Sequence record: MN047793.1 | Length of the DNA stretch: 64,000 nt | Strand: one strand, 5' to 3' | In this document: positions 14,812 to 23,293 of the stretch, piece after piece | Layout: every line of letters starts with the position of its first letter | Numbering within the stretch: position 1 is the first letter of the stretch | Notes under the pieces: model-generated | What the model was told of the DNA's origin: nothing | What the model saw: only the letters and a program-made list of their open reading frames with translations | Database searches by the model: none | Made by a program: the position numbers and the translations under genes

Positions 14812-15203
14812 TGAAGACATTTAGTATGAATGATATAAATGATATGCTATTTTTTAATGATTTATATTCATTTACAAAAAAGTGCTATGACAGAAACTCT
14901 CCTCGTTCTCCAGTACTTTATAATTATACGAATGGTATACAGGAATGGTCGTGGTGCAATAATTTGCACGCAGTACTCATCAGTGATGATACTACTAAAC
15001 ATCAGGCTAGTATTTATGTTGATGAATTACTTATGGGCGAGTTACAATATACAATTTCTGATAGACGCAACATAGTCGTTGACAACATTCCCCTGATTAA
15101 TACTGACGACTTTTACGATGAAATTTTGAAATTCATTAATAAATGGGATATCATACCACAATCATCTATGGATTTAGAAAATGAATTCCCCCATAAAAAT
15201 TAA
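14811..15203 (+). CDS. Array paralog 15
   Basis: QEWSWC, IYVDELLM, KFINKWDI. Confidence 0.7.
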   Translation: MKTFSMNDINDMLFFNDLYSFTKKCYDRNSPRSPVLYNYTNGIQEWSWCNNLHAVLISDDTTKHQASIYVDELLMGELQYTISDRRNIVVDNIPLINTDDFYDEILKFINKWDIIPQSSMDLENEFPHKN

Positions 15204-15528
15204 TGATAATGATAATGACCTGTTCTATGAACAACTCTATCCGTTGTTAAAAATGATGGAGTATAATTTCGACTCAACTAAATCAAGCGAAGTATTTTCA
15301 TGTTCTAACATTGATGATTCCGTTGTAATTTGTAGGGAATATTTAGCTGGTAAATACTTATTAGATGAGCTATACATTTATATAAATGAACGCCTTGTGG
15401 CGTATTACAGTTTGTATATATGTCCTACTCCATTTTATCTGGGTCCTGTGATAGTCTCGGTAGATCATGATGAATTTATGAATAATATCAATAAATTTGT
15501 GGATACCTGGGGTAGACTTGACACCTAG
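15181..15528 (+). CDS. Array paralog 16
   Basis: MMEY, IYINERLV, KFVDTWGRL. Confidence 0.7.
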   Translation: MNSPIKINDNDNDLFYEQLYPLLKMMEYNFDSTKSSEVFSCSNIDDSVVICREYLAGKYLLDELYIYINERLVAYYSLYICPTPFYLGPVIVSVDHDEFMNNINKFVDTWGRLDT

Positions 15529-15545
15529 ATGGGAAGTGATATAAT
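15518..15545 (+). promoter_or_regulatory. Internal sigma70 promoter (extended -10)
   Basis: TTGACA-16-TATAAT with TG at -15/-14; ATG only 5 nt after the -10 box. Confidence 0.7.
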
Positions 15546-15550
15546 TAGGT

Positions 15551-16111
15551 ATGAACAGGCCATTATATGATAATTTATATCAACAGATTTTATCCAAACT
15601 AAACAGTGACATCAGTAATGAGTTACTTATTGCCTCTGGTGTAATAACCCATACTACACCATACAAAAACTTCATTTTTAACAAACATCCTTACAAAAGT
15701 GTAGTTCCATTTAATAACGTACGGAATATGCACACCAGTGATACACCGTGTTATACCATTAAGACAGAAGACGCAATGGTCATGCAGTTACGGTTGCGCC
15801 GCCTTTATATGTCATTTTGCGTTAAAACTAGACTTGAATCCTATGGATTAAAATATGTTTCTTTCGCCTGCTCTCGGCAACCTAAAATTGTAGAGGCAGT
15901 AACTGATTTAAACATAAGTAATGGTGGTTCACTGGTGTTGATAGTCATCAATGAAAGTACATTTGTATTTCTAATAGATGTTGACATCACAGAATTAAAT
16001 GATGACGTTATTACAGAATCATATATTGATGATGAAGAACTATTTTCAGAATTAAATGAGTTCTTTATTGATTATACTGGATTTAACGTATCTGAAATGT
16101 TAGAGAGTTAA
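15551..16111 (+). CDS. Hypothetical protein, probable distant array member with N-terminal extension
   Basis: IVINESTFV and ELNEFFIDY echo the array motifs. Confidence 0.6.
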   Translation: MNRPLYDNLYQQILSKLNSDISNELLIASGVITHTTPYKNFIFNKHPYKSVVPFNNVRNMHTSDTPCYTIKTEDAMVMQLRLRRLYMSFCVKTRLESYGLKYVSFACSRQPKIVEAVTDLNISNGGSLVLIVINESTFVFLIDVDITELNDDVITESYIDDEELFSELNEFFIDYTGFNVSEMLES

Positions 16112-16112
16112 T

Positions 16113-16505
16113 ATGCCATATAATTTCCCTATCGCATCCAAGAGATTCATCATGACCAATGATGTCATGACTCAACTTCAGGAATATGAAGTTCAGGAAT
16201 TCTTACTTAGGATTGCTAGATTATGTGCCAGTAATCCAGATAATAAATTCAATGATGTTGTCTTCTTCCCCAGAGATAACGCAAAAATATATAGTCCTGA
16301 ATATGATACCACCACATGTTTGGTGCTAATGGATGGATATTTCAAACTGACCTTGAACGAACAGAAGTTTTCTGTGCGTATACCAAATATGTATGCTAAT
16401 ATTTTAGAATTCATAGATTCATATACAATTGTTGAAGGTTACGATGGAGAAATATTCAATCACGTAATGAAATTTATTGAAGACTACTGGATCATCAAAT
16501 CATAA
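16113..16505 (+). CDS. Hypothetical protein, probable distant array member
   Basis: LTLNEQKF and VMKFIEDYW. Confidence 0.6.
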   Translation: MPYNFPIASKRFIMTNDVMTQLQEYEVQEFLLRIARLCASNPDNKFNDVVFFPRDNAKIYSPEYDTTTCLVLMDGYFKLTLNEQKFSVRIPNMYANILEFIDSYTIVEGYDGEIFNHVMKFIEDYWIIKS

Positions 16506-16518
16506 GAAGTGCTAACGC

Positions 16519-17061
16519 ATGCGTTATAAACAATTTAACATGGTACAAGGTTCCGCTTATTCGGAATTAACACCATTACAGCAGGATTATTATGTAATGC
16601 TGGTTCGTATTCGTAAATTACTAGAATATGGACTTGGATATTCCGTTAATTTAAAAACTAGACTGCGAATAAAATCTAAAACTGGTCAAGGTCACGGGTT
16701 AGTTCAGCTATATGAAGTGACATTTTCAAATGGATTTATGATTACCTATGGCACAAACAAATCTGGCTCTTACTATTTTGAATTAGATTTTTCATGCTAC
16801 AAGTTGGTAGTGTCAAAGCTGTTCCATGGAAAGCCAGAGTTGGTTGCTTCTAGAGATTTAATGTTTAGAATCAATCATACTATCTTCTGTAAGGCTCTTG
16901 TTGATAAAACTAATGATATTGATGAGTTAGAGTTAGAATCACTACTTCAGGAGTTCTATGACGACTATATGGGGGAAGATGCGTACGGAGAGCTTATACG
17001 CAATTCCATATTGAATGACAGCCTAACTCCTGCGGAGCTACAGCGTATGACGCCATGGTGA
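16519..17061 (+). CDS. Hypothetical protein, possible distant array member
   Basis: FRINHTIF and LQEFYDDYM. Confidence 0.55.
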   Translation: MRYKQFNMVQGSAYSELTPLQQDYYVMLVRIRKLLEYGLGYSVNLKTRLRIKSKTGQGHGLVQLYEVTFSNGFMITYGTNKSGSYYFELDFSCYKLVVSKLFHGKPELVASRDLMFRINHTIFCKALVDKTNDIDELELESLLQEFYDDYMGEDAYGELIRNSILNDSLTPAELQRMTPW

Positions 17062-17113
17062 GCTTACAGAGCTTCCTATGGCGTTTTACGTACATTGATG
17101 GTATACTGCCAAA

Positions 17114-17407
17114 ATGAATTCATTTAAATTACTTATTAACTTCATTGAACAGTGTAAGTTACATTCAGGAAACGGACGTTACATTGCTACCAATGTCAAT
17201 GACATCGCTTCATTTGCTGATGTGTCTATCCCAATGGAAGTAAAGATTACCGAAAGTGGTATTAGCATTGAAAAGCCAGCAGTATCATATCTCTCTATAA
17301 ATTGGGATAGGATTCCTGAGAAATATAAACGGGAAATCGTAGACATTCTCACTGAAGACGAATTGGACAAGCAATTAGAGCGTGAGTTACGATCATTCTT
17401 TACGTAA
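17114..17407 (+). CDS. Hypothetical protein
   Basis: ORF after extended -10 TGgTATACT (17099-17107). Confidence 0.55.
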   Translation: MNSFKLLINFIEQCKLHSGNGRYIATNVNDIASFADVSIPMEVKITESGISIEKPAVSYLSINWDRIPEKYKREIVDILTEDELDKQLERELRSFFT

Positions 17408-17456
17408 TGCTTCAGCTATACCAAACAATCCCATAAACATCATCGACACACTAAGG

Positions 17457-17488
17457 AATGCTGCATTATTATATGCGGCATTTTTTAA
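17457..17488 (+). terminator. Intrinsic terminator ending the array operon
   Basis: AATGCTGCAT...ATGCGGCATT followed by a T-run. Confidence 0.6.
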
Positions 17489-17553
17489 TTCTAGCAAAGA
17501 ATAAATGAAAAGGGCTGCGGATAGCAGCCCAAATATCACTCTAAAGATTAATT

Positions 17554-18294
17554 TCATAAGTCTGAGATGATTTGGTTAAACTTTTTTCCGTCTCTAGTAC
17601 TTAGTGCTTCAAAAATTGCCTTAGCATTTTCAAGAATTGATACATTCATTTGTGGCATGATACACGATAATGAATATCTTCCACTATTTGGTCGGACAGT
17701 ATCTAAATGGTAAGTATGAAGTTTAGTTTTAATATCAGTAAAGGTGGAATCCTTATCAATGTCCAGTTTATGGATGTCCAGACTTAAAATATTTACATTA
17801 TCCAAAATACAAATTGTTACCGCATCAAATGCTCGTTTTCCATTTAAGGTTTCTACAATGTATTTTGCCCCAGCATAGTGAATAGAAGTAGTGTATAAAC
17901 TTTGTACTATAATTTCTGCACTGTCCTCATCAATGTATTCTGGAGTGTATGAATCACTCCACCTCATATTTGATAATTCAGGAACCCATCCAGTCTCTAT
18001 CGCAAGCTTACCTAATGTAGTAAGAACGTCATTCGCTTCTTTTTTAATAATGTTCTTTTTTTCTACATCAGCTGTATCTACGTAATCGTATACACCCTTA
18101 ATTACTCCCTGTATCATATCATTAAGGTCTACTACCCCATAATCCTGAAGTTCCCTAAGCTTGGCACACAACTTTGGCTTCTTCTTAGAGTTATTATGAA
18201 TATCAAACTCTAGTAATGGAAGTGGGCCTTTCTTCTTACATGACTTACGGAGTTTTTTTGGAATAGCAGGTACTTGTGGAAGCTGAGTGCTCAT
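17554..18294 (-). CDS. Hypothetical protein with basic N-terminus
   Basis: 246-aa ORF. Confidence 0.6.
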   Translation of the reverse strand: MSTQLPQVPAIPKKLRKSCKKKGPLPLLEFDIHNNSKKKPKLCAKLRELQDYGVVDLNDMIQGVIKGVYDYVDTADVEKKNIIKKEANDVLTTLGKLAIETGWVPELSNMRWSDSYTPEYIDEDSAEIIVQSLYTTSIHYAGAKYIVETLNGKRAFDAVTICILDNVNILSLDIHKLDIDKDSTFTDIKTKLHTYHLDTVRPNSGRYSLSCIMPQMNVSILENAKAIFEALSTRDGKKFNQIISDL

Positions 18295-19309: not shown

Positions 19310-19362
19310 GAAGACCCCAGCACTAAACGGTTTGTATCCGCCGTTTATTGTTGGGGTCTTTC
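19310..19362 (+). terminator. Long imperfect hairpin or terminator
   Basis: AAGACCCCAGCA-c-TAAACGG pairs with CCGTTTA-t-TGTTGGGGTCTT. Confidence 0.55.
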
Positions 19363-19413
19363 AATTTAGAAAATAATGTTGTAAAATATCATTCTCATAA
19401 TAGGAGACATAAA

Positions 19414-19653
19414 ATGAGTAGAGCAGTAGTTTATACCCGATCATCATGCCCGTGGTGTGTTAAAGCCAAGGAGCTTCTAACCGCACAAGGCATTTCATTT
19501 GTTGAGCACGTTATCGGTTCCCCCGAGTTTGCAGACAAAGAATCATTACAAGCCAAGTTAGGTCGCCCAGTTAACACAGTACCACAAATTGTACTTGATG
19601 GTGCATACGTTGGTGGATACACCGACCTTGCCGCTAAACTTGGTGCTGCGTAA
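19414..19653 (+). CDS. grx: Glutaredoxin
   Basis: CPWC active site, TVPQI and YVGGY; start MSRAVV after AGGAG. Confidence 0.9.
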   Translation: MSRAVVYTRSSCPWCVKAKELLTAQGISFVEHVIGSPEFADKESLQAKLGRPVNTVPQIVLDGAYVGGYTDLAAKLGAA

Positions 19654-19877
19654 TGAGCGCCGAGATTTATTCAACCCCAACATGTGGCAACTGTGTTTCA
19701 GCTAAAACTTTGCTAAAATCAAAGAATATTCCATACGTTGAATACACAATTGGTGCAGATGTAGATAAGAGTACGTTGGAAGCACGTATTGGAACTCCAA
19801 TTCGTTCAGTTCCACAGATTTTCATCAATGATGAATACGTTGGTGGACTGCAAGAGCTACGTTTTAAGATTTCCTGA
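19653..19877 (+). CDS. grx: Glutaredoxin (second copy)
   Basis: CGNC, SVPQIF and YVGG. Confidence 0.85.
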   Translation: MSAEIYSTPTCGNCVSAKTLLKSKNIPYVEYTIGADVDKSTLEARIGTPIRSVPQIFINDEYVGGLQELRFKIS

Positions 19878-19882
19878 ACCAT

Positions 19883-19909
19883 AAAGGGATGCCACCAAGC
19901 ATCCCTTTT
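19883..19909 (+). terminator. Intrinsic terminator
   Basis: AAAGGGATGC-loop-GCATCCCTTTT. Confidence 0.75.
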
Positions 19910-19971
19910 ATTTTGTAGTAATGTTGTAAAAGTTGAAGTACAATGTACTCCTACATTTAAGAGAAGCTGTC

Positions 19972-20421
19972 ATGCAATACATTAAAGGTGACATCACCAA
20001 AGAAACCGAAGGCCTAATCATACATGGCTGCAATTGTCAAGGGGTTATGGGTAGTGGCGTAGCACTGGCTATCAAGACCAAGTGGCCTGAAGCATTTGAT
20101 GCCTATCGATCACACAAACAATCTGCTAAGAATTTAGGCAAGGTACAATTTGTCAACATTGATAGCAACCTATACGTAGGGAACTGTTGGACTCAGGAGT
20201 TCTTTGGTAAAGATGGACGTGTGTATGCGGACATTGATGCGGTTAAGAAAGCACTGATTACGTGCTTTGAATTCTGCGAAGACTATGAGTTAGAATTGAA
20301 GTCACCCAAGATTGCAGCCGGACTAGCTGGCCTTGATTGGGATACACAAGTAGCTCCAATTTTTGCTTCATTAGAAGAGTGTTTCTCTGATGTAGTCGTC
20401 AAGATTTACGTGATTGACTAA
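19972..20421 (+). CDS. Macrodomain (ADP-ribose binding/hydrolase) protein
   Basis: IKGDIT, IIHGCNCQGVMGSGVALAIK and PKIAAGLAGLDW. Confidence 0.88.
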   Translation: MQYIKGDITKETEGLIIHGCNCQGVMGSGVALAIKTKWPEAFDAYRSHKQSAKNLGKVQFVNIDSNLYVGNCWTQEFFGKDGRVYADIDAVKKALITCFEFCEDYELELKSPKIAAGLAGLDWDTQVAPIFASLEECFSDVVVKIYVID

Positions 20422-20856: not shown

Positions 20857-20882
20857 AAAAAAGGAGCCAGCGGCTCCTTTTT
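20857..20882. terminator. Bidirectional terminator
   Basis: AAAAAAGGAGCC-agc-GGCTCCTTTTT between convergent genes. Confidence 0.8.
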
Positions 20883-20883
20883 C

Positions 20884-21504
20884 TTATCGGTAATACTTTT
20901 GCATCACTTCAGTATTCACACCTACGTCTAAAATGACAGGGCGCCCATCATAAAATCCCCAATTGGCGTGTCTATCAAAATCCCCAATAAGAGGGTCATA
21001 ATTTAACACAAAGTCTTGCATTGCTTGTGCTAGATCACTTTCAATGTTAATCTTTGGTTGGAATTCCCGAGTATTTCTATTTCTTAGGGTTCTTACCCAG
21101 TCCATAAGATCAGATAATTTACCACCGCAGGCTTGCTTGAAATGTGCATCGGTTACTTTACCGGCTAACTCTGTATGAATCCAAGTAGGCTGATTATTAT
21201 TTTCATCATAATCAATCATAGGAATGAATAGGTTTAGATTCTTTAAATACCAATCTTCCAGATATTGCGCCTCTACTTCATTCTGAGCCGCGCCCTTTAC
21301 ATTCTTAGCTACCTTTAAAACCGTATCTTTGCCGTTGTATGGAATGATGAAAGCAACTCGTGAACTTCCTGTACCAGCCTTCTTAGCTCGCTCCTGAGCG
21401 TATCTGACGCGCTTTGCGAAGGGTAGTCGCTCATTGAATATAGCACTATCCCAATCATCTGGGAGTGGCGCTTCCGTTAGAAATTGAGAGAATGTCATTG
21501 GCAT
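20884..21504 (-). CDS. Protein-kinase-like fold protein
   Basis: Gly loop GTGSSRVAF, VLKVA Lys, QNEVE alphaC Glu, catalytic-loop-like GDFDRHANWG, DFG-like ILDVG. Confidence 0.7.
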   Translation of the reverse strand: MPMTFSQFLTEAPLPDDWDSAIFNERLPFAKRVRYAQERAKKAGTGSSRVAFIIPYNGKDTVLKVAKNVKGAAQNEVEAQYLEDWYLKNLNLFIPMIDYDENNNQPTWIHTELAGKVTDAHFKQACGGKLSDLMDWVRTLRNRNTREFQPKINIESDLAQAMQDFVLNYDPLIGDFDRHANWGFYDGRPVILDVGVNTEVMQKYYR

Positions 21505-21509
21505 AACGA

Positions 21510-21866
21510 TTATCCTTTATACTTGTCCCAACGACCTTCACGGTGAGCATCTTTACTCGGAGATGAAGGATTTAAATTGGCTTCTGCATCAGTAATGTAT
21601 GACAATACATCTTCAACTACTCCATCAAACTTTTTACGTCTATTATCTAGCGCATTATAGAGTTTAGCACTCAACTCATCCATTTGTTCCGGGTTATTGT
21701 GGAACTGTTTAAATGCTTCTGCGAATGGACCATTAAGGAATTCACTCAATTCTTGATTAGCTTTTTGTAAGCTGTGCAGCGCTTGTGCAGCTTGACCAAC
21801 CTGAAAGTCTTCTGATAAATTCTTCTGACGAATTTGGTCAAACAATTGGTTTAAGGGTTTTGACAC
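21510..21866 (-). CDS. Hypothetical helical protein, probably late
   Basis: ATAAATA at 21888-21894; N-terminal LSE motif. Confidence 0.55.
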   Translation of the reverse strand: MSKPLNQLFDQIRQKNLSEDFQVGQAAQALHSLQKANQELSEFLNGPFAEAFKQFHNNPEQMDELSAKLYNALDNRRKKFDGVVEDVLSYITDAEANLNPSSPSKDAHREGRWDKYKG

Positions 21867-21964
21867 GGTAATTTCCTTTGTTTTACTTATTTATGTATGG
21901 TTGAACTTGACGTACCCATAAAAGTCTTGTATAATTTACAAATCAACAGACTTGGAGAACTATC

Positions 21965-22429
21965 GTGGCGAAATTTTTTGAAACTTGGCCCAAATACGTT
22001 AAAGTGCTTGGTCATCATGATACCTCAGTGTATTTGGCAAATGACAAAGACCAATTTATTGAAATTATGATATCAACTGCCCTACAATGGCTTGCTGATG
22101 GCGATTTCGGTGAAGAGGCTTGGTATGACCATGGTACATATTACGATTATTTTAAGAAGAAGATGGGTGGCATGAGTGAAGAATTCTTCACTACCAATAT
22201 CTTACCATTAACTAATGATAATCATAATATTGATGAATTAAAAAAGCAGGGTCGTTCCTTGAAAGACCTGTATAGAAAGGATAAAATAGCACTGTCTGAG
22301 CTAAAGTTTGTTAAACAGCTTAGTATCGGTGAACGTCCAAAGGGTTATATTAACTTTCTGTACCACACTCTTACCGAACATACATTAGATTATTCCCCCC
22401 GGTTTGTTGTAAGCAATTTTGATAATTAA
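21965..22429 (+). CDS. Hypothetical protein
   Basis: GTG start after GGAG; sigma70-like promoter upstream. Confidence 0.55.
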   Translation: MAKFFETWPKYVKVLGHHDTSVYLANDKDQFIEIMISTALQWLADGDFGEEAWYDHGTYYDYFKKKMGGMSEEFFTTNILPLTNDNHNIDELKKQGRSLKDLYRKDKIALSELKFVKQLSIGERPKGYINFLYHTLTEHTLDYSPRFVVSNFDN

Positions 22430-22432
22430 GGA

Positions 22433-23245
22433 TTAGTTATATTTCCAATAAAATCCTTTCCATTCTTTGTTATGTTTAAGATATTTGTGTAATGTAGTTA
22501 CTCCTACACCAAACTGACGACATACATCAGATGCTGAAGCCCACACATGTATCAATCTCCCAGATAGGTCATATTGGGCTATCTGTTTTGAATTTCTTTT
22601 ACTTAAATCAGTTCGTAATATATTATATTTTGTAACATCTTCCGTAATGTCATATTCAGTAGAATATCTCCAGTAATACCCATAAGATATTCTACGTTTA
22701 TGCTTTCTACATGCCTGATTTATATTAGCTTTATTTCCGGGTGAGCCAGTTAACATTTCTGCGGCCGATTGTGAAGACGGAAAGGTATGTTTTACAGTAT
22801 TACTTTGAGGACATATTGCCACAATTTGTTTTGCCGTGGCCTTACCTCCTGGATTATTTCGTTTTAATCGTGCAAGATGTTCGGGTGTATGTCTATATCC
22901 TGCCATTCCTTCACCACCATCAGTGTGGTTGACTAGTATCCCAGTTCCTATGTCACGTCTACCATAGAATGAAATTCTCCGTCGTTCTTCTGTAAAAGCA
23001 TCAACCTCATTTAATGATTCAAATACTATTTTGATTTCTGGGAGTTTATTTGAATCCATGATTTTCGAAATAGTGTTATACTTATGAGTTTGCTTGAACT
23101 TTCCGGATTTATAATATCGAGTATCTTTAATATGTTCAGCTAATCTACGATAGCCTTTAGTGGTTCTAGTACCCTTACCAACATAAAATATTTGATCAGT
23201 TAAAGGGTTCCATAATTCGTATACGTAAAAAATTTTGCTTGACAT
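22433..23245 (-). mobile_element. Free-standing GIY-YIG (LEM-3-like) homing endonuclease gene with NUMOD3/NUMOD1-like repeats
   Basis: FYVYEL...FYVGKG...RLAEH, NHTDGGEG and KQIAQYDLSGRLIHVWASAS; antisense to its neighbours; late promoter at 23275-23281. Confidence 0.8.
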
Positions 23246-23293
23246 AATTATTTCCTATGTTATAGTTCTATCAATATTTATGAGGATGCAGTT

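Follow-up and report, generated by a model that had tools for sequence, protein, structure and literature searches.

Could a phage carry a ready-made kinase in its head and deliver it into the next host cell along with its DNA? This question is raised by a locus of Xoo-sp13, a jumbo myovirus of Xanthomonas with a genome of 309 kb (MN047793.1), located in a stretch of 64,000 nucleotides that was analysed here (hereafter, the window; window positions equal genome positions minus 62,000). The second gene of a two-gene unit in this stretch, Xoosp13_166, encodes a small protein that combines the motifs of a kinase with an N-terminal leader resembling the capsid targeting sequence of phage T4, and the unit is preceded by an ATAAATA element, the late promoter element of T4-type phages. 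Host defences threaten phage DNA above all during the opening minutes of an infection, when no phage protein has yet been synthesized and only proteins that were injected can counter them. If it exists, a pre-made kinase would unite the delivery mode of the T4 internal proteins and Alt with the mass phosphorylation carried out by the T7 kinase. Kinases packaged by T4-like cyanophages have been described before, as has the targeting mechanism of T4; what is new here is a very large kinase family, labelled hypothetical everywhere, and a signature that may mark injected effectors generally. Xoo-sp13 and phage XacN1 are rare experimental handles on this family.

Predicted fold and active site of Xoosp13_166

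The AlphaFold2 model of Xoosp13_166, built from 39 homologues, has a predicted local distance difference test score (pLDDT) of 91.3 and a predicted template modelling score (pTM) of 0.85. Its elements follow the canonical kinase order, with strands 41-45, 49-56 and 59-66, helix C at residues 69-83, and strands 96-99 and 108-112, followed by a C-lobe that consists of three helices, a loop (173-181), strands 182-185 and 188-191, the DVG motif (193-195) and a final helix (198-205). The model thereby contains the five-stranded N-lobe with helix C, the hinge, and the helical C-lobe with a catalytic loop by which the protein-kinase-like fold is recognized. The fold stops 11 residues past the DxG motif, where only the helix 198-205 remains. 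As modelled, Xoosp13_166 is a truncated kinase that lacks about one third of the normal domain, namely, the activation segment and helices F to I.

In Foldseek searches of PDB, Swiss-Prot models and viral models, the named matches were protein kinases, APH, Rio, Bud32 and ArkI (E-values of about 1e-4, TM-scores of about 0.4). An exhaustive VIA-align search also returned kinase-type matches, with Z-scores of up to 9.1 and a single SAICAR synthetase entry as the sole exception among the named matches, and a fold search of the ESM Atlas agrees with a kinase-like fold. The truncation, which removes about a third of the kinase domain, accounts for the modest scores.

The residues of the active site, to which roles were assigned by order and secondary structure rather than by residue-level superposition, are listed in Table 1. 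Given that the catalytic residues are 96-100% conserved across the family, Xoosp13_166 is very probably an active kinase-fold enzyme and not a pseudokinase, as far as the alignment and the model can tell. The motifs GTGSSR, VLK, NEVE, GDFDRHAN and ILDVG, from which the preliminary description of this locus had read a minimal kinase fold, all occur in the 206-residue open reading frame (ORF) at the places given there, and the structural comparison that it had proposed as a check bears out that reading.

At the sequence level, this relationship is not apparent. Searches with Xoosp13_166 (phmmer and profile searches against PDB, Pfam and NCBIfam) revealed no link to known kinases, and its sole family match, in a PHROG scan, was PHROG 4301 (1.5e-14), for which no function is assigned. 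The Pkinase profile (PF00069) did not match Xoosp13_166 and gave trace matches (E-values of 0.002-0.007) in two relatives. Neither Xoosp13_166 nor its relatives matched the Pfam profiles of APH (PF01636) or choline kinase (PF01633), the likeness to these enzymes being structural only. The T7 kinase family phrog_2828 was not matched in the PHROG scan, and PF27024 is possibly absent from the Pfam copy searched. The Kinase-PolyVal profile (PF18762) had no match at E ≤ 1 in the genomes of Xoo-sp13, XacN1 and Alishewanella phage vB_AspM_Slickus01 (OQ508957.1; hereafter, Slickus01), nor was it detected by hmmscan of 78 family members.

A large phage-confined kinase family

A full HMMER scan (E ≤ 1e-3) yielded 2,286 clusters at 50% identity, a family without a Pfam model. 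The ESM Atlas clusters of this family are 96-100% viral, and among 185,579 genomes of prokaryote species, members were found only on two short contigs of metagenome-assembled genomes. By this distribution of sequences, the kinase family is phage-only. The two contigs, JBKJTP010000088.1 and JAAYNW010000092.1 (16 kb and 26 kb), come from metagenome bins and are probably mis-binned phage DNA. The cultured carriers detected by tblastn with three family members were only four: Xoo-sp13, XacN1 and two Alishewanella phages.

Extra, paralogous copies of the kinase are common in uncultured phages, with 49 copies in 23 of the 80 IMG/VR loci. The kinase domain is also fused to other domains, including GNAT, DUF6934 and, in one relative, ART-PolyVal, and occurs in tandem kinases and in a DUF6934-GNAT-kinase arrangement, with L/I-x-E at the domain junctions. 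In one further protein, the kinase is fused to a tail protein resembling T4 gp15, possibly through a gene-call read-through. No conserved operon partner of the kinase gene was identified; its neighbours vary and include genes for Dps-like, SOD, GP88, gp23, UvsX, SNase, PP-loop and UvdE proteins.

Probable late expression from an ATAAATA promoter

Whereas ATAAATA is depleted in the window (13 copies observed against 26.7 expected), its placement with respect to genes is distinctive. Of the 63 copies in the whole genome, about 48 have the start of an ORF (45 codons or more) 16-55 nt downstream, and under a strict ribosome-site filter, 44% of the copies precede genes, compared with 7-26% for eight control 7-mers. 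Among the genes that follow the element are those for the T4-type portal (PF07230, 2e-96) and for the scaffold, the latter being upstream of the major capsid gene, as well as a structural gene of phrog_211. Xoo-sp13 encodes a gp55-like late sigma factor (phrog_234, 2e-32). On the strand of the kinase operon, no sigma-70-like site was found upstream of the operon, such a promoter being present only for the divergent gene. In related phages, ATAAATA occurs within 70 nt upstream of 31 of the 78 kinase-family genes, but only of 185 of the 1535 other genes. Together, the placement of the element at gene starts, its structural-gene targets and the gp55-like sigma factor make late transcription well supported, and the promoter sequence renders late expression of the kinase gene highly probable. 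The late promoter of the preliminary description is thus a real element.

Within the window, about 9 of the 13 ATAAATA sites (Table 1) are followed, at a distance of 15-45 nt, by a ribosome-binding site and start codon, among them those of the large genes Xoosp13_173 and Xoosp13_174 (728 and 756 aa). The sites provide a map of likely late units in a region that is otherwise full of early-type genes.

A leader resembling the T4 capsid targeting sequence

The capsid targeting sequence of T4 is MKTYQEFIAE (PMC8442874). Mutational analysis has assigned its residues 4 and 7 to targeting and residues 8 and 10 to cleavage, and the gp21 protease cuts after L/I-x-E (PMC9026906). When counted back from the glutamate, the first 11 residues of Xoosp13_166 have F, F, L and E at the key positions, where T4 has Y, F, I and E, and alanine comes next in both. 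In the model, residues 1-10 have a pLDDT of 53 and are not packed against the fold, yet L9 and E11 are conserved in at least 90% of the sequences. A strict leader pattern matches 1 of the 448 Xoo-sp13 proteins, against 0.1 expected from shuffled sequences.

The machinery that such a leader would require is encoded by the same phages. Xoo-sp13 has a T4-type head, with a gp21-type protease (Xoosp13_275; PF03420, 3e-23), gp23 (PF07068, 1e-101) and gp20 (PF07230, as above). The gp21-type protease and gp23 are also present in XacN1 and an Alishewanella phage, as well as in 13 of the 14 large IMG/VR genomes that carry the kinase, including 9 of 9 complete ones.

The leader is not limited to kinases. 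Among 58 fusion proteins with a non-kinase first domain, 32 fit M[RK]..[ED]F[IL].E at their N-terminus (MRANEFITE, for instance), with DUF6934 or GNAT following, and unrelated proteins encoded in the neighbourhood carry the leader in 38 of 1535 cases, compared with 1.04 expected by shuffling. In Slickus01, nine consecutive co-oriented genes, of which the kinase gene is the last, have products that start with MKIDxLYESLLxE-like sequences; one of these products is an ART-PolyVal ADP-ribosyltransferase, and ATAAATA elements occur between some of the genes. Judged by these sequences, the run has the appearance of an effector array whose members bear a capsid targeting leader. The occurrence of the leader on unrelated fusions, on neighbouring proteins and in the Slickus01 array, together with its flexibility in the model, indicates a portable signal and not just a part of the kinase. 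In IMGVR_UViG_3300040801_002079 (positions ~14956-17956, minus strand), the prohead protease gene is flanked by four small, unrelated ORFs with the N-termini MKLSDILTE, MKLNDILLE, MKLNDILVE and MKRTFIEFLTE; these ORFs are located less than 5 kb from the kinase gene, in a layout that resembles the prohead core and internal protein genes of T4.

L/I-x-E directly precedes 46 of 58 internal kinase domains and is also found before GNAT modules. Such tripeptides fit protease sites between modules, but by the same token this short stretch belongs to the domain boundary. The T4-like N-terminus of the preliminary description held with respect to the four key positions, the portability of the leader and, as shown below, a link to virion proteins, with the caveat that its L/I-x-E end also coincides with a domain boundary. 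The identity of leaders was nearly the same within a phage and between phages (0.565 vs 0.508), most of the sampled loci being from one clade.

Within Xoo-sp13 itself, the portability of the leader is weak. A loose leader pattern was rejected as too unspecific, with 26 matches among the 448 proteins against a 2.4% background, and the strict [RK]-type pattern matched none of them. Xoosp13_285 (genome positions 194414-195463, minus strand, outside the window; 349 aa, no family match) starts with MRLLQFLSEA, with ATAAATA 22 nt upstream, and on these features is a candidate for a second packaged protein. Xoosp13_274 (plus strand, 161 aa), an acidic, proline-rich protein without a family match, is encoded next to the prohead protease gene, starts with MKIQSILNE, a looser match, and has ATAAATA upstream; to judge by its position and leader, it may belong to the prohead core or be an internal protein.

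Leader-bearing proteins in the virion of cyanophage S-CREM2

For S-CREM2, a T4-like cyanophage, the virion proteome determined by mass spectrometry comprises 52 proteins (PMC10665884). The strict leader pattern (of the MK.F..FL.E type) was applied at the gene starts of its genome (OR473000.1, 206 ORFs). It marked four ORFs, the products of which were all in the virion proteome (one-sided Fisher test, p = 0.003), a value to be read with the fact that the pattern was written after three of the leaders had been seen, the independent part being the fourth match and the zero matches among the 156 non-virion ORFs. With a looser pattern and alternative starts, the tie to virion proteins was not significant (p = 0.14).

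The four proteins are the SAM hydrolase gp6 (MKDFDSFLEE), the hypothetical protein gp13 (MKDLHSFLTE), the APH-like kinase gp14 (KRFDAFLTE) and the cytidylyltransferase encoded by ORF154 (MKNFSSFLTE). All are non-structural virion proteins, and they include the three that were classed as regulatory by the authors of the proteome study. Three of the leader ORFs have ATAAATA directly upstream, and the gp14 kinase is encoded by the second gene behind such a promoter, as in Xoo-sp13; S-CREM2 also encodes a gp21-type protease. The published account mentions neither a targeting sequence or shared leader nor ATAAATA promoters (PMC10665884).

Comparison with known systems

The closest parallels in delivery are the internal proteins of T4 (IPI, IPII and IPIII) and the ADP-ribosyltransferase Alt, which are processed by gp21. 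These share with the Xoo-sp13 kinase a leader of about 10 residues, with aromatic or hydrophobic residues at T4 positions 4 and 7 and L/I-x-E at positions 8-10, and a late promoter; in addition, Xoo-sp13 encodes homologues of gp21, gp23 and gp20 and a gp22-like protein, and the leader is found on unrelated cargo, including, as in Alt, an ADP-ribosyltransferase. The differences are that the cargo is a kinase, none of which is packaged by T4, that the end of the leader is joined to a domain edge, PLPxDWD, and that packaging and cleavage are here predicted. Virion-associated kinases of T4-like cyanophages are represented by S-CREM2 gp14 and have also been reported for S-CRM01, S-TIM5 and S-CBWM1 (PMC10665884). 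Gp14 resembles Xoosp13_166 in its kinase fold, T4-like phage background, leader type and promoter arrangement, but it is a 755-residue, APH/choline-kinase-like protein without sequence relation to the Xoo-sp13 kinase family.

Other parallels concern the enzyme. Kinase-PolyVal domains have lost the C-terminal subdomain while keeping the catalytic residues, and occur alongside ART and GNAT domains in proteins for which injection together with invading DNA has been suggested (Iyer et al. 2017, PMC5512222). The truncation with retained catalytic residues and the links to ART and GNAT are shared with the Xoo-sp13 family, one relative of which is fused to ART-PolyVal itself; however, the Xoo-sp13 family consists mainly of stand-alone proteins of T4-like phages and not of giant multidomain proteins of Verrucomicrobia and Bacteroidetes elements. 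The T7 kinase gp0.7 has a compact, atypical kinase domain, and its broad phosphorylation disarms many host defences after expression (PMC13645617). T7-type kinases are among the fold matches of Xoosp13_166, and one look-alike ESM Atlas cluster carries Phage_T7_kinase, but gp0.7 is the product of an early gene, is not packaged, has DPV in place of DFG, and carries a C-terminal shut-off and DNA-binding domain, whereas Xoosp13_166 has DVG and a late-type promoter. Finally, Bud32/PRPK, Rio and ArkI are similar in their small size, reduced C-lobe and structural scores (Z of 7.3-8.0); these are, however, cellular enzymes with ribosome- or tRNA-related roles and without sequence relation to the phage-confined family.

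Proposed route of the kinase and alternative explanations

We propose that Xoosp13_166 is an active truncated kinase, an N-lobe with a minimal C-lobe that ends just after DxG, which would be transcribed late, as the second gene of its operon, from the ATAAATA promoter read by the gp55-like sigma factor. Residues 1-11 would carry the kinase into the scaffolding core of the T4-like prohead, where the gp21-type protease would cut after L-T-E11 and leave a kinase of ~22.5 kDa, starting at A12 (APLPDDWD...), inside the head. Together with the DNA, it would then pass into the cell infected next, where its host targets would be phosphorylated ahead of any phage gene expression. By analogy with T4 and S-CREM2, packaging through the leader is fairly probable, and the kinase probably reaches the next host cell by injection, together with the DNA. 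The complete chain, including cleavage and injection and leaving the class of substrate out of account, we place just on the probable side. Host proteins appear the likelier target, given the ART and GNAT partners and the precedents of Kinase-PolyVal and the T7 kinase (PMC5512222, PMC13645617), and we hypothesize that the purpose of the kinase is anti-defence. For Xoo-sp13, packaging, cleavage, kinase activity, substrates and the anti-defence role are all steps that we infer. The preliminary description is borne out in part: three of its four steps, namely, the kinase fold, the late promoter and the T4-like leader, hold, while its fourth, the disarming of host defences by protein phosphorylation, stands as a hypothesis.

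Several observations weigh against this scenario. The mature protein is mildly acidic (pI of ~6), unlike the basic internal proteins of T4, and the neighbours of the kinase gene are metabolic (macro domain, glutaredoxins, nucleotidase), with no head genes among them. Only one other Xoo-sp13 protein, Xoosp13_285, fits the leader patterns used, at its annotated start. The strict pattern was, as noted, fitted in part to the S-CREM2 leaders. The virion study of XacN1, based on gel bands, and its supplement do not mention ORF170, the XacN1 kinase, and no published virion proteome covers Xoosp13_166. No RNA sequencing run contains the kinase region. None of the results indicates the substrate class, and in fold searches APH and ArkI do no worse than protein kinases.

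Could the kinase instead remain in the cytoplasm of the producing cell and act late on, for instance, assembly proteins or host factors, its N-terminal segment being simply the first helix and a domain boundary? The hydrophobic-L/I-x-E-(A/M)-PLPxDWD sequence is kept even in front of internal kinase domains, as would be expected of a domain feature, and may be a structural domain edge as well as, or instead of, a signal. Many T4 genes with late promoters encode proteins that are not virion components, and both the metabolic neighbours and the lack of strict [RK]-type matches in Xoo-sp13 fit an unpackaged enzyme. However, the leader stands at the extreme N-terminus of fusions whatever their first domain, heads many unrelated proteins, including some that flank the prohead protease gene, marks only virion-detected proteins in S-CREM2, and, in the model, does not pack onto the fold. 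We therefore consider an unpackaged kinase unlikely. The fold itself might also have lost its activity and serve as a binder or as a structural protein inside the head. The truncated C-lobe would agree with this, as would the spacing between D175 and N181, which is 6, one residue above the canonical 5 of the catalytic loop; but the ATP-binding and phosphotransfer residues are, unlike those of pseudokinases, 96-100% conserved across a very diverse family, which makes a dead kinase very improbable.

The other question is what an active enzyme would phosphorylate. Whether packaged or not, it could be a kinase of small molecules or nucleic acids, either APH/choline-kinase-like, with a metabolite or antibiotic as the substrate, or an RNA 2'-kinase like ArkI. 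The activation segment and the peptide-binding helices F to I of classical kinases are absent from Xoosp13_166, APH(4), APH(2'') and the RNA kinase ArkI are found among the fold matches with similar scores, a few relatives show trace matches to APH_6_hur, and the GNAT fusion recalls the bifunctional AAC-APH resistance enzymes. Conversely, the top fold matches are mostly protein kinases, and no Pfam match to APH or choline kinase was obtained. In polyvalent proteins, the fusion and array partners ART-PolyVal and GNAT are interpreted as modifying proteins (PMC5512222), and the T7 kinase is regarded as a protein kinase, as are the truncated kinases found in polyvalent proteins (PMC5512222, PMC13645617). 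On balance, a substrate other than protein is improbable, and a kinase that targets host proteins is the reading that we retain.

This reading may extend beyond Xoo-sp13. T4-like phages at large may carry modular, leader-tagged cargoes, namely, the mini-kinase, ADP-ribosyltransferases, GNAT, DUF6934, SAM hydrolase and cytidylyltransferase, each preceded by an L/I-x-E site, that would exist as separate genes, as arrays, or as "mini-polyvalent" fusions cut apart in the head; the ~200-residue kinase would be among the most widespread of these and would be injected to phosphorylate host proteins before phage transcription. We regard this generalization as plausible and just short of probable. If it is true, the injected effectors of thousands of uncultured phages could be predicted from sequence by their leader alone. 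The combination of the leader with a late promoter gives a rule, simple and open to testing, by which packaged effectors can be sought in T4-like genomes.

Organization of the locus

The features of the locus are listed in Table 1.

Table 1. Features of the Xoosp13_166 locus and ATAAATA sites of the window
Feature	Window position	Strand	Remarks
Xoosp13_166	20884..21504	-	206 aa; truncated protein-kinase-like enzyme (predicted); annotated as hypothetical
Leader MPMTFSQFLTE, residues 1-11	21472..21504	-	Candidate capsid targeting sequence; ends in an L-x-E prohead-protease site
PLPDDWD, residues 13-19	21448..21468	-	Domain start after the predicted cut; P13, P15 and W18 at least 90% conserved; kept whether N-terminal or internal
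Glycine-rich loop GTGSSR, residues 44-49	21358..21375	-	G44 in 99%, G46 and R49 in 100% of ~280 domains
K64 in VLK (62-64)	21313..21315	-	ATP-anchoring lysine of strand 3; 279/279
E78 in QNEVE (74-78)	21271..21273	-	Helix-C glutamate, expected partner of K64; inside helix 69-83; 278/279
Catalytic loop GDFDRHANWG, residues 174-183	20956..20985	-	D175 265/272 (97%; E in the rest); N181 262/272 (96%)
DVG, residues 193-195 within ILDVG (191-195)	20920..20928	-	DFG equivalent, metal-binding; D193 and G195 271/271
Xoosp13_167	21510..21866	-	118-aa helical protein; GTG start; first gene of the operon; annotated as hypothetical
ATAAATA element	21888..21894	-	T4-type late promoter element; 21 nt 5' of the GTG start of Xoosp13_167
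GC-rich hairpin GGAGCC-AGC-GGCTCC	20863..20877		A and T runs at its flanks; folding of about -16 kcal/mol on either strand
All ATAAATA sites of the window	15017-, 18952+, 21894-, 23281-, 27453-, 29758-, 30016-, 31890-, 33978+, 45141+, 46274+, 61786+, 63712-		13 sites; strand given after each position

The end of Xoosp13_167 and the ATG of Xoosp13_166 are separated by a gap of 5 nt, and the two genes form a two-gene unit. Xoosp13_167 had no match in a family search; it shows 51% identity to ORF171 of XacN1, encoded in the equivalent position, and is conserved in XacN1 only, no such gene being conserved beside the kinase in other phages. The hairpin downstream of Xoosp13_166, missed by a simple terminator scan and confirmed by folding, is likely a two-way terminator that closes the operon against the convergent gene. 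The layout in XacN1 is the same, with ATAAATA, ORF171, ORF170 and an equivalent hairpin in this order.

Just downstream, on the opposite strand (19348-20421, plus strand), are a tandem pair of glutaredoxin genes and a gene for a macro domain (Appr-1-p processing), which are syntenic in XacN1. Macro domains are able to reverse ADP-ribosylation, and this one may bear on host-phage conflict.

Upstream of the operon, a near-consensus sigma-70-type promoter (TTGACG-17-TATAAT, 11/12 match; 21907-21935, plus strand) serves the divergent gene at 21965-22429, so that the 98-nt intergenic region holds early-type and late-type promoters back to back. Beyond this gene, an ORF of 270 aa (22433-23245, minus strand) has ATAAATA 29 nt upstream (23275-23281, minus strand); its N-terminus, YVYELWNP...IFYVGKG, resembles, as we judge by eye, that of a GIY-YIG homing endonuclease.

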